A stretch of DNA of 64,000 nt from Chlorokybus atmophyticus (GCA_009103225.1 RHPI01002973.1:26096-90095); one strand, 5' to 3'; positions 48,449 to 58,221 are shown, counted from the stretch's first letter. Translations and numbers: made by a program. Notes: a model not told the origin generated them from the letters alone.

Positions 48449-49569
48449 TCAAAAGACTGGCTCAATGTCTTCACCAGTGCGTGCCAGAAAAATAACATCA
48501 TACTGCCGACATGTGCTTTGGACCGCATCTCTTGCTTTGTCTGAAACACTTTCTGCCATATATGCGACATGAACATTGACATTACCGCGCGACGCTATGA
48601 GATATGTGCGAGCCACTTGAATGAGCTCGTTCACGACCTTCGCGTTATCAGCGTATTGCTGCAGCTCGCCGACGATGAGGTCCGAGCCGCATGTCCCTAC
48701 AAAAGTAACTGTTGCCAACACTGTGTCACCTATTCTAACCTCTCCTCGCATCTCCGGTCTCGGCACCACTTGCGCCCCCAATCGCTGCGAGAAGATGCGC
48801 ACTACCGCTTGTGAAAACTCCGCCTCGCGCCGAGCGGTCAAATGCCGTTGCTCTGCTTCCATGCGTTGAACACGGCCTGCAAGGTCACCTCGTGGAGAAC
48901 GCACATGATACACGACACCCTCTTCCAAAAGATTCAAGTCGCTGAGGCCTGGGCCTTTACCATCCTTAAATAACCCTCTGATGCCATTCGCGGCATACCA
49001 CCTGTTGAAGTTGGCAGCATCAAGGAAGTACAGTTGGTACTCTTGCAGCCCCTTCACTTCCTCCACGTCAAAGATGTCAATGGTCATGTCTACACACGGC
49101 GCATGTCATAAGGCAACAGGGCACATGCTAGAAGGACTCAAAGCAAATGCAATTTAAGAATATTTTATAGGCAATATTCTCACAAACGTCACCTGTTTGG
49201 GGCGTGACAGGAAGAGGAGACATGGGAGGCTCTTCGCTTTGAGAAGATTCTGAGGCATTCGCAGGGTCCCTCATACCCTCATCAGGCCTGCCGCCTGATG
49301 CGCAAACAAGTACACACACACGCATTAGCAATGCAGTTTCAGCGGTTAGCAACAAATCAACAACATACACGCATGTAGTGCACCAACCAACCGTTTGACA
49401 AGTTGGCGCAGAAGGAAATTGCTGTGCGTCTGTGGCGAGGGAAAGCGACTGCATGTTGTAGAGGCCGTGCAGCCTTGTGGATGAACCTTTGACCGGGGTG
49501 CTGACACCCGAAACGGGCGCCGTGCGATGCCACAACCAAGCCAGCCAATGCAGCAGGCATCGAAGCCAT
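48449..49569 (-). CDS. Transit-peptide-like N-terminus plus PD-(D/E)XK-fold protein with degenerate catalytic motifs (paralog A, ~306 aa)
   Basis: Exons 49569-49392, 49294-49193 and 49089-48449 splice in frame (921 nt). TVTF...GELQ replaces EVDF...GEHK. Confidence 0.8.
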
Positions 49570-49829
49570 GCTTCGGACGGCAATGGCTTTGTCCCAAGTG
49601 GCAGACCTGATGAAGAGAAGTGAGAGAGTGCGTTATTGCATTTGATAGACAATACACTTGACTACACACAAGTGCATGCGTGAGACACACGGCCTATGCA
49701 TGCACTACTGTCTTAGCCTAGGAGCAACAAGCAAATGTGAAGGAGTTCTAAGCAATGCCAGAGACAAACGGTGACAGCCAGGACAACTCGCAAGCGTGTG
49801 TGTATATCAAAAGCAGACTCAACAGCAAT

Positions 49830-50830
49830 GCAAGAGCTAGCTATGCTAAAACTGTGTTAGGGTGTGTGCTTACCGGTGGACGGTTGCTGCAGCCAGTGCC
49901 TTCCGCAGCGAAAGGCTCTGAGTCATGACGGTCGCTAGCACACGCTGTGGCCGTTGCTAAGCAGCGCCCAACGCTCTTGTTGCCCCCCTGGATGAAATGC
50001 CAATGCCGCCTGCAACGCAAAGCAGACCATGGTTTGAATGCAAGGACGAGAGTGAGGACCAAGCAGATGTGAGACAGCTCTAAGCAATGCCAGACCTTGG
50101 TGCCGACGATGCGCCAGCGGCTCACGCAACCAAAAGCCTTGCAAGGGGTGTTGAGTGAAGGACAAGGGCTGTCGTGGACGGAGTCGTCGGGGTGCGTACG
50201 CGTAGAAGGCGTAAAGGTGGATGTAGTGGGTTGGGTCTAAGGCGAAAGAAAGAAGAGATGTCGAGCAGGACCTGGGGGTTCACATCCTCCAGCGAGTTGA
50301 ACACCTGCAGGCGATTGTGTGGGCGACTAGCCATGAGTGTGTGCGTGCGTGCGCGTCCACGATTGCATGTGCGTGCAGCTGGCATCTGCGTGCTCATGTG
50401 TGAGCGTGAGTGCGTCAACGCCCGTGTGTCCCAAGCGACTCGTGAGTGCGTTGAGAGATAGTGATGGCCGTGCATCTGCAACGCACCTTGCTTTTGCCAG
50501 CCTTTTCAGCGACGAACACTCTCCCGTCAGGTGCGGACCGCGCGCAAGTTGGCTGTGTGAAAGTGCCGCCGGCAAGTTGGCCTGCCTTGCGATGGGCTGC
50601 GCAATCCAAAAGACAGCCATGACAACTTGCAAGCGTTCGTCACAACGTCATCAAGCAGAGCCAACCGGTAGAGCGGTAAGAGCTAGCTATGCTGCATCTG
50701 CGTTAGGGTGTGTGCTTACTTGTGGGCGGTTGCTGCAGCCAGTGCCTTCCGCAGCGACAGGCTCTGAGTCACGGCGGCCGCTAGCACACACCGTGGCCGT
50801 TGCTAGGCGGCGCCCGACGCCCTCACAGGA
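49830..50830 (-). repeat. Duplicated 5' exon of paralog A (copies at about 49830-49985 and 50675-50825)
   Basis: Two highly similar segments, each ending in the donor GTAAGCACACACC. The proximal copy has an ATG and the distal copy has GTG. Confidence 0.8.
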
Positions 50831-51430
50831 ATGCCACCACCACCACCACCATCACCGCCGCCGCCGCCGCCGCCGCTGCAGCTAAACGCAAAGCAGAGAC
50901 AAGACGGGTGACTGGTCCGGCCCTTGCCCGAGCCCGAAGGGATGTAGGATCCCATTGTAGTACCCCAATTGAAAAGCCGAAACAAAGGACGAATGAATGA
51001 TGTGAGCGGTCCCGAAAGCCTAACTCTGCCAGCGTGGCAGGCCGAGGGTTAGGGCCCCTGTCTGTACCAAAGTACAGCTGTACAGCTTACTACACAGGCG
51101 GTGTTGTTGTGGATGCGCATGTGGGTGTGTAGGGAGCAAACAGGTTGAGGAGGCTGCTGGCTGGCTGGCTGGCCGCTCGTGTCTGAGCGGCGCCGCAAGG
51201 AAGAGGGACAGGGGGGTAGGCTTAGCCTGCTGTGAGCTGTGAGCTTCGAGGCTGGCACAGAGATGGTGAGAGGAGGTACGAGAGAGCGAGAGAGCGAGCG
51301 AGAGCGCGAGAGCAAGAGAGAGGGAGAGGGGGGTAGGCTTAGCCTGCTGTGAGCTGTGAGCTTCGAGGTTGGCACAGAGAGGGTGAGAGGAGGTGCGAGA
51401 GAGCGAGCGAGCGAGCGAGCGAGCGAGCGC

Positions 51431-56009: not shown

Positions 56010-56720
56010 CAGTGAGTGGTGCTGGCCGCTTGGCAGGTGGCGGTGGCAAACTCAAGCACGCTCTGCTTTGGGACGGCTACGACCAAGAGCCTGTTCGGAG
56101 CCTGCTCACCGGTAAGCACACACCTTGGGGCACTTGTTGGAGTATGCATGCTTGCTGTCATAAGCACTGCTTCATCACGTTGTTGAAGTCTCCTGCACGC
56201 CATCATGATAGACGCAGTTCAAGCACTGAGTGGTGCTACTGCCCTAGGGTAGCTGGCATGGCTGCTTGCTGCATAGTAGCCGCTACTATGCATGCATGTC
56301 GTGTGGACTGAGTGGTGCTACTGCGTGGCAGGTGGCGGGCCTAAGATCTACAAAGGGCTCTGCGTTGAGACGGCTGCGAGTAGAGCCTGTTCGGAGCCTG
56401 CTCACCAGTAAGCACACACCTTAGGGCACTTGTTAAAGCATGCATGCTTGCTGTCATAAGCACTGAGTGGTGCTACTGCCCTAGGGTAGCTGGCATTGCT
56501 TGCTGCATAGTAGCCGCTACTATGCATGTCGTGTGGAAGAGTCTGAGTGGTGCTACTGCTTGGCAGGTGGGGGGGGCAGGCCGATCGTCAAAGGGCTCTG
56601 CTTGCGCGGCTAACGGCTACAAGCAAAGCCTGTTCGGAGCCAAGCTTACCAGCCTGCTTACCAGTAAGCACACGCCTGAGCGCAACTGTAGCAGGCATGC
56701 TCAACAACTTGCTGAGCACT
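56010..56720 (+). repeat. Three tandem copies of a non-coding 5' exon unit upstream of paralog B
   Basis: Repeated TGGCAG|GTGG...GAGCCTGTTCGGAGCC...ACCR|GTAAGCACAC at about 56030-56125, 56325-56420 and 56560-56675. Confidence 0.8.
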
Positions 56721-57052
56721 GCTTAAAGTCTCCTGCACTGCACCTACGTCTATGTCTATGTCTACGTCTTTGTCTATAGCATGGCATGTCATAGACACAG
56801 ACGCCGTTCATGCATTGAGTACATCAACCGCGTCTATGCCCTGGGCTGGTTGGCATTGCTTGATTGTGTGAACTTGCAGGTTTGCTTATACGCCCAGACA
56901 TTCGTGCATGCGTAGGGCATAGGTCATGCATGCACATCTTTCAACACGCAGGCCTTCAGTCCAAGTGTACTGCCTATCGTTCATGCTAACACACGTCACT
57001 TCCCTTTACCAGGGCCGTGCCACCGCGGGGCAAAGGCATTGTTGTTCGAGGT

Positions 57053-58221
57053 ATGGCTACATATGTGGCGGAGTTGGCTTGTTTGGCATTCGCTGTGGCA
57101 GCGCATGGCGCCCGTTTCAGACGTCTGGTTCCTGGCCAAAGGTCTCCTCAAACAGCTGCCCCGCTTCCATGCCAGTGGCATGCATTGGCGACTTCTCATA
57201 AGAAACGCATCGCCACGTCTCTTTGCGCCGGATCGTCGAATGGTTAGTCAACACATGCTTGCATGTATGTCACTAGTTGCTTGTTGTTACTGGCTTGCAT
57301 TGCTTATGTGTGCGTGCGTATGTTTCAAGATCAGGTGGTAAGCCCGATGAGAGTTCAAGGGACCCTTTCAGTGCCGCATACTTTGATCAAGGCCAGGAGC
57401 TGAGCGCTGCCCCTCCTTCTCAAGCTCGCTTAACCGGTGAGAGACATGGTAACATTGCATGTTGTTTCTTGCATGACAAACGAACAAACATTGCATGTTG
57501 AGTAGTCTCGAATTGTATATGTCTTGTGAAGACTTATGAGTCCCGACAACATATCGTCTGTTATGTTGATGATGTACAATGTGTAGACAAGATGATGTTC
57601 ATCATTGACAAAGAGCAACCGGAGGAGCGGCAAACACAGAAGCTGTGGTTTCGTGATGCCAGACACTTTGACAAGTGGTTTCTCGACAATGGCATGGGAG
57701 CCTTGTTCAAGGACGGTGGAACTCTTGGCATCAGTGCGTTTGAGGCTTTGGAAAATGGAGCCACATACCATCTGCGTGGTCGCAGAGGTAGTCTTCGTCG
57801 CCGCGTCGGCAACTTGTGGGATCGCGCACGAGAGCTGACTCACCGACGAGAAGACGAGTTTGGCAAAGCGGTAGCGCGAGTTTACACGCAGCGGCTTGGG
57901 GCAGAAGTTGTGCCCAAACCAGAATGGCGAAAAACAAAAGAAGGCAAACAGGTTACAGCAGAAGTGGATTTTGCGGGTGAGTGTGGTGAAGCGCTCATTC
58001 TTGGCGAGCACAAACCATCTGTAGGTGGCGACAGCGATGTGCAGGACCTGATCAACAAGGCCGAGCGATATCAAAAGAGTCTGGGTAAACGCTATGTTCA
58101 TTTGGCGTTTATGACTGAGTCTGCTTCAGAAGAACACTGGACTACGCTCAAGGCAAAATGCTGGCAGAAGAACATTCTGTTGCTATACCGCACGGGCCGA
58201 CACATTCAGCCAGTCTTTTGA
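57053..58221 (+). CDS. Transit-peptide-like N-terminus plus PD-(D/E)XK nuclease with intact motifs (paralog B, ~308 aa)
   Basis: Exons 57053-57242, 57335-57436 and 57587-58221 splice in frame (927 nt). The catalytic pattern is E(RREDEF)...EVD(57967)...EHK(58006-58014). Confidence 0.82.

Follow-up and report, generated by a model that had tools for sequence, protein, structure and literature searches.

Gene structure and paralogy of A and B

We analysed a 64,000-nucleotide stretch of the Chlorokybus atmophyticus genome (GCA_009103225.1, RHPI01002973.1:26096-90095; hereafter the window, with positions counted from its first letter) and studied two genes in it, A and B, whose predicted proteins carry the nuclease fold of the PD-(D/E)XK superfamily. 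The window is eukaryotic, with a G+C content of about 52% and spliceosomal introns. Gene A lies on the minus strand (48449-49569) and gene B on the plus strand (57053-58221); each has three coding exons, for predicted proteins of 306 and 308 amino acids, respectively. Both were first seen as open reading frames (ORFs), at 48449-49087 (minus, A) and 57526-58221 (plus, B), and their last-exon ORFs were 42% identical over 208 residues (E = 8e-51). The two genes are thus paralogues, as had been claimed in an earlier description of this DNA made from the sequence by itself (hereafter the sequence-only reading). A tblastn search of the window showed no further copy of the family.

The exon structures given here are predictions assembled from genomic DNA. 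Exon 1 of A (49392-49569, minus strand, 178 nt) runs from the ATG at 49569, encodes a leader without acidic residues and corresponds to residues 173-232 of an annotated protein model, P0002 (see below); it is followed by exon 2 (49193-49294, 102 nt) and by exon 3 (48449-49089), which includes the stop codon. In B, exon 1 (57053-57242, plus strand, 190 nt) starts with the ATG at 57053 and encodes a leader with one acidic residue in 62, exon 2 (57335-57436) has the same 102 nt as its counterpart, and exon 3 (57587-58221, again including the stop codon) begins at an acceptor homologous to that of A. Exon 2 is in phase 1 at both ends in both genes. All the introns are GT..AG and in phase 1, their positions match between the genes, and the exon-3 acceptor, gtgtag/AC (the slash marks the junction), is identical. 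Exon assembly therefore confirmed the matching intron positions and phases and the common length of the middle exon that had been noticed before. Two other phase-1 acceptors are open in B, at 57503 and 57506, and either would add about 27 residues to the predicted protein.

Domain architecture and active sites

An AlphaFold2 model of the last exon of B (208 residues), based on an alignment of 13 sequences, had a mean predicted local distance difference test score (pLDDT) of 83.6, with values above 88 over residues 80-208. In the model, residues 1-60 form a small alpha/beta domain; a helix of 35 residues (67-101) and the nuclease-fold core come next, and the elements from the helix onwards are helix 67-101, strands 113-142, helix 147-163, strand 167-176, helix 179-191 and strands 195-206. 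The core arrangement of the PD-(D/E)XK superfamily is present, i.e., a helix, three antiparallel strands, a second helix and a further strand. The limits taken from this model in gene B were 57595-57774 for the N-terminal, beta-grasp domain, 57793-57897 for the helix and 57931-58212 for the core (plus strand). Transferred to exon 3 of A, they placed the same three elements at about 48902-49081, 48779-48883 and 48458-48745, respectively (minus strand).

Foldseek comparison of the B model with the PDB gave XisH, EndoMS/NucS, Nt.BspD6I, PaqCI, Can2, MspJI, SfsA and RecU, with a best E value of 1e-3 and probabilities of up to 1.00. A second structural search (VIA-align) found NucS (Z 9.8), Can2 (9.3), AF1548 (8.9), PaqCI (8.5) and CdiA-CT toxins (8.4), and nearly all the top fold matches of B belonged to the PD-(D/E)XK superfamily. 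Structure matches in the ESM Atlas carried PDDEXK_10, Hjc, DUF3782 or DUF8196 domains, and the look-alikes found with a language model came from the Mrr_cat, NERD and Card1_endonuc families. The N-terminal domain folded alone had a mean pLDDT of 64.6 (78-82 in its core), and all of its 50 best structural matches were beta-grasp folds. Doublecortin (DCX) domains came first, with Z values of 7.0 to 5.3 (Z 7.0 with a root-mean-square deviation, rmsd, of 4.7 over 73 residues; Z 6.7 with an rmsd of 3.2 over 68), and the CIDE-N domains of CAD/ICAD and DREP3 matched at Z 4.3. No Pfam match to DCX or CIDE-N was obtained, and Z values in this range permit a claim of common fold only. Structure prediction and fold searches thus agreed on the ubiquitin-like domain and the restriction-endonuclease fold named in the sequence-only reading, and for both proteins they support a predicted architecture of a leader, a ubiquitin-like (beta-grasp) domain, a long helix and a PD-(D/E)XK fold.

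The best match to the core of B was the C-terminal nuclease domain of NucS/EndoMS (PDB 2vld and 5gke), with a Z of 9.8, an rmsd of 3.0 over 103 residues and a Foldseek probability of 1.00. NucS is an archaeal or actinobacterial protein. It resembles B in the order of helices and strands and in the placing of an Asp ahead of one strand and of x-K within the following one. The two differ in that the N-terminal domain of NucS is a dimerising, DNA-binding beta-barrel, whereas that of the family described here is a beta-grasp, and the NCBIfam model of NucS (NF003270) matched only one of 13 family members, at a non-significant E value of 0.061. Prokaryotic 'stalk plus nuclease' proteins (DUF3782, DUF8196, PDDEXK_10 and Hjc-like) are similar to B in that their small PD-(D/E)XK domain comes after a long helix, with template modelling scores (TM-scores) of 0.47-0.55 normalized by the query and of up to 0.77 by the target. 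This likeness is structural only: those proteins are bacterial or archaeal and lack the beta-grasp domain, and no family member matches Pfam.

The residues of the putative catalytic constellation of B, numbered on the 208-residue model, are spread over 57850-58119 (plus strand): E86 (57850-57852), E88 (57856-57858), E123 (57961-57963), D125 (57967-57969), E138 (58006-58008), K140 (58012-58014), D146 (58030-58032), D148 (58036-58038) and E175 (58117-58119). In the model they show the canonical geometry, with D125 between strands, E138-H-K140 in the next strand, and E86 and E88 in the long helix. At the positions of E123-V-D125 and E138-H-K140 in B, gene A encodes T-V-T and E-L-Q; the motifs reported in the sequence-only reading are present. 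The degenerate site of A occupies 48659-48712 (minus strand): Thr at 48710-48712 and Thr at 48704-48706 replace the family Glu and Asp, the Glu at 48665-48667 is kept, and Gln at 48659-48661 replaces Lys. The GDSD loop after the active site reads DNAK in A. In P0001, a further Chlorokybus member of the family (see below), the putative catalytic Asp is replaced by Ala and the Lys by Glu.

No other residues are so well conserved in the family as E123-x-D125, K140 and the subsequent G-D-S-D loop, which 9-10 of the ten homologues from outside Chlorokybus retain. The non-Chlorokybus homologues have 59 conserved columns, of which B kept 40, A 32 and P0001 33. Seven of them were kept by B only (E123, D125, K140, V143, G145, S147 and D148); outside these seven, B kept 33 of 52 and A and P0001 32 of 52 each. 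Judged from the residues retained, A and P0001 have lost the putative catalytic centre specifically, with the scaffold preserved.

Family members, divergence and surrounding DNA

Searched exhaustively, 1.84 billion representative proteins yielded a family of 14 clusters. Chlorokybus, with three of them, is its only named source: P0002 (jgi Chlat1 Chrsp152S00783) can be mapped exactly to gene A, P0001 is encoded on the same scaffold as A and B, outside the window, and P0008 lies on scaffold 360 and is apparently frameshifted. With B, the C. atmophyticus genome has at least four loci of the family. The proposal that A and B are an exclusive pair, A being the dedicated partner of B, is at odds with the dead copy P0001 on the same scaffold and the broken P0008 on another. 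B was not found in either of the two protein collections searched, which may simply not hold it, and it is probably unannotated. A word-indexed protein search with its last exon gave no match, close paralogues being outside the length range of that search. No more than four proteins were retrieved with a family profile, and each of them came from an environmental (Logan) assembly; the non-Chlorokybus clusters come from environmental or unlabelled assemblies, on contigs of 2-4.6 kb with 53-61% G+C and no neighbouring gene identified. Scans of viral and metagenome contigs with single proteins detected no relatives, and literature searches on Chlorokybus and restriction-endonuclease-like proteins and on the sample accessions of the environmental homologues returned nothing relevant.

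The tree of the family, (B,(A,P0001)), had 100% support, and with this topology a single ancestral catalytic loss is the simplest account of the A and P0001 sites. On the path since the duplication, A had accumulated 0.94 changes per site and B 0.50, i.e., the dead lineage evolved about twice as fast. The pairwise ratio of nonsynonymous to synonymous divergence (dN/dS) between A and B was 0.47-0.51 with a dS near 1.05, a ratio that fits purifying selection and is not separable by lineage. Since the scaffold of A outside the active site is as conserved as that of B, A is better regarded as a maintained pseudo-nuclease than as a decaying copy; by this residue pattern it looks like a convincing pseudo-nuclease kept by selection, and the earlier claim of selection on A is supported.

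Two observations were made on other members. At the protein level, P0001 and P0008 are mosaics relative to A, with exons 1-2 being 85-91% identical and exon 3 just 51-57%; the 5' module may have evolved in concert, or paralogues may have exchanged exon 3. The divergent members P0009, P0010 and P0014 share one sample (L002/L003, L006, L007; SRR14578335 or SRR14578347). P0014 has lost the catalytic Lys and sits on a long branch, its sample-mates P0009 and P0010 are intact, and the three may represent a second, independent active/dead set.

The first 62 residues of A and B contain 0-1 acidic (Asp and Glu), 7-8 basic (Arg and Lys) and 12-14 Ala residues, a composition that fits an organelle presequence and would be compatible with import. 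A good splice acceptor lies about 40 nt 5' of the ATG in both genes. The 200 nt upstream of the B start codon (56853-57052, plus strand) contain a likely acceptor for an upstream intron at about 57012 and are 74% identical to the equivalent region of A (49570-49769, minus strand; z of 16 against shuffles). Intron 1 is also 74% identical between the genes (49295-49391 in A and 57243-57334 in B; z of 13 against shuffles). Both values exceed the 62% DNA identity of exon 3, and the 3' flanks have nothing in common. Gene conversion was considered as the cause of the conserved 5' region and is disfavoured: synonymous divergence in exons 1-2 (0.7-1.05, near saturation) is about as high as in exon 3, so that conserved non-coding elements explain the 5' identity better than recent conversion. 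Such elements would fit shared regulation of the two genes, at which the alignments hint.

In the annotated model P0002, an upstream exon is joined to the equivalent acceptor of A, near 49608, which places 172 residues of doubtful coding value before the leader. The upstream exons of this model (49873-50955, minus strand) are small and include low-complexity Gly runs, one fragment occurs also in the P0008 model, and the piece of the extension that was tested had no match in Pfam. P0002 thus seems to be a fusion of gene A with unrelated upstream gene fragments. Three tandem repeats of about 237-296 bp lie 5' of B (55986-56701, plus strand), each with the splice-donor-like sequence CACCG/GTAAGCACACACC. 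The segment with CACCG/GTAAGCACACACC is found twice upstream of A as well, at 49832-49977 and 50678-50823, in copies 846 bp apart and 88% identical, and P0002 uses the donor at about 49873 in one of them. These repeats may be duplicated alternative 5' exons or promoters of A and B.

A and B are divergently oriented and 7.5 kb apart. The opposite orientation described in the sequence-only reading was verified; the two are not neighbours, since the duplicated upstream segments of A, a (GA)n tract and a DnaJ gene lie between them. The (GA)n microsatellite (51020-51883) is uninterrupted over about 850 bp, with one ambiguous base, and separates the upstream region of A from the DnaJ gene. The latter (about 51880-54105, plus strand) is a multi-exon DnaJ/DnaJ-X gene (DnaJ, E = 6e-6; DnaJ-X pieces, E = 9e-9 and 2e-6) and has the appearance of a normal host gene with introns, so that no support was found for the idea that the adjacent host genes are frameshifted. 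Farther away, the window holds two copia-type ORF sets in opposite orientation, at 37487-39832 (plus) and 40357-42234 (minus), in a transposon-rich region; their products include RVT_2 (E = 2e-66) with an integrase, and gag, gag-pre-integrase and integrase. No inverted or long terminal repeats were found bounding A or B.

Probable roles of A and B

Within a well-known superfamily, A, B and their relatives make up a new family whose combination of domains is also new. The account that we favour as a whole, with moderate confidence, is that of an undescribed eukaryotic nuclease-fold family in which B would be a nuclease and A a pseudo-nuclease under selection. A and B are each predicted to have a beta-grasp (DCX/ubiquitin-like) domain of about 65 residues, a helix of about 35 residues and a PD-(D/E)XK nuclease-fold domain. 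In C. atmophyticus, duplication has brought the family to at least four loci, and its genes there have two additional 5' coding exons for the basic, acid-poor leader. The site of B appears intact: its first helix carries a Glu, E-x-D precedes the second core strand, x-K is part of the third, and the G-D-S-D loop is present. As it retains all the active-site residues conserved in the family, B is probably a metal-dependent nuclease with DNA or RNA as its substrate. A and its closer paralogue P0001 would descend from one duplicate that lost exactly those catalytic residues and kept the scaffold.

For A, the most likely role would be that of a non-catalytic nucleic-acid binder or of a non-catalytic partner subunit of a catalytic member of the family. 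In XPF-ERCC1, MUS81-EME1, the catalytic and structural subunits of the tRNA-splicing endonuclease and the large and small subunits of R.BspD6I, a nuclease-fold gene was duplicated and one copy, having lost its catalytic residues, is retained as a partner. The splicing endonuclease subunit of Pyrobaculum and both BspD6I subunits were among the fold matches of B; these systems differ from A and B in domain architecture and have no sequence relationship with them. A partner-subunit or binding role is a more conservative proposal for A than that of toxin-antidote, inhibitor or restriction component.

Several points weigh against this account. Position 138, a Glu in B, is Ser in the non-Chlorokybus homologues (consensus D...S-x-K), and since Ser thus stands where the (D/E)xK motif calls for Asp or Glu, catalysis is not assured even family-wide. 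The leader is absent from the homologues outside Chlorokybus, which begin with the beta-grasp domain or bear a coiled coil or a different N-terminal region. The true start codon of A and B is uncertain, given the likely upstream exon in both. The only sequencing run with the B stretch is low-coverage DNA, in which contigs continue unbroken through intron 1 and the 5' flank, with no joints, and which speaks neither for nor against expression. The models were built on a shallow alignment of 12-13 sequences, and Pfam, NCBIfam and PADLOC searches with all the members and a PDB sequence and profile search (E up to 10) gave nothing significant. Prediction of an A+B complex from the helix and nuclease parts scored 0.00, which is evidence neither way.

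The serine in the consensus also speaks for a different explanation, in which the family contains no nuclease at all, its PD-(D/E)XK fold is used to bind nucleic acids or proteins, as in RAP-domain proteins, and what separates A from B matters little to function. Losses at the active site do recur independently, as that of the Lys in P0014, and searches gave no sequence match to any catalytic family. However, E-x-D, K and G-D-S-D are the residues most conserved among the non-Chlorokybus members (9-10 of ten), as expected of a catalytic centre, and the copies that lost them evolve faster; we judge this explanation unlikely. About equally improbable is that A is a non-functional duplicate drifting to a pseudogene, with its open frame a leftover and only B, if any, at work. 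It would agree with the twofold faster A lineage, the fairly relaxed pairwise dN/dS of 0.5, the apparent frameshift in the related P0008 and the missing catalytic residues of A. Against such decay, the 306-codon spliced frame and its four splice sites are intact, the losses fall in the seven active-site columns instead of being scattered (32/52 scaffold columns kept versus 33/52 in B), and P0001, long split from A (branches of 0.45 and 0.40), has the same pattern.

The toxin-antidote or restriction module advanced in the sequence-only reading, i.e., B and A as a dedicated nuclease-inhibitor or toxin-antidote unit of selfish or defensive nature, fared worse. Active and dead forms do share one scaffold here, the family is multi-copy with a broken member in a transposon-rich window, and the conserved 5' flanks and intron 1 hint at shared regulation; the beta-grasp fold also pairs nuclease and inhibitor in CAD/ICAD, although the match was just Z 4.3. 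Yet a 7.5-kb gap with an unrelated DnaJ gene separates the two genes, which speaks against tight linkage as one unit, PADLOC gave no match, no repeats bound an element, and the other dead copies are located away from B, all of which make such a module very unlikely. Dispersed copies with common upstream non-coding DNA, and copia elements nearby (37-42 kb), might instead suggest that A and B are cargo or remnants of a mobile element and not host genes. This is very improbable: neither gene has terminal inverted or long terminal repeats or an associated transposase or reverse transcriptase, their spliceosomal introns are conserved, and no relatives appeared among the viral contigs scanned. A bolder version of the pairing, to which we likewise attach very little probability, is a CAD/ICAD-like system imported into an organelle, in which the dead paralogue would pair with the active one by way of their common beta-grasp domain or the helix and restrain it, with a role in the breakdown or processing of organelle DNA or RNA; if this were true, an early-branching streptophyte would possess a regulated organelle nuclease of an undescribed kind.

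In practical terms, B is apparently missing from public annotation and the model of A is apparently fused to unrelated fragments. If the account favoured here, an active B and a selected pseudo-nuclease A, is confirmed, it would add the combination of beta-grasp and PD-(D/E)XK domains to the restriction-endonuclease-fold superfamily, in eukaryotes, in a family whose one named source belongs to the earliest-branching streptophyte algae. If the leader truly directs import, A and B would be candidate proteins of DNA or RNA metabolism in an organelle. A would also constitute, if confirmed, a clean natural pseudo-enzyme, in which only the catalytic centre was lost and the scaffold remained constrained; at least one further lineage within the family shows a similar loss.

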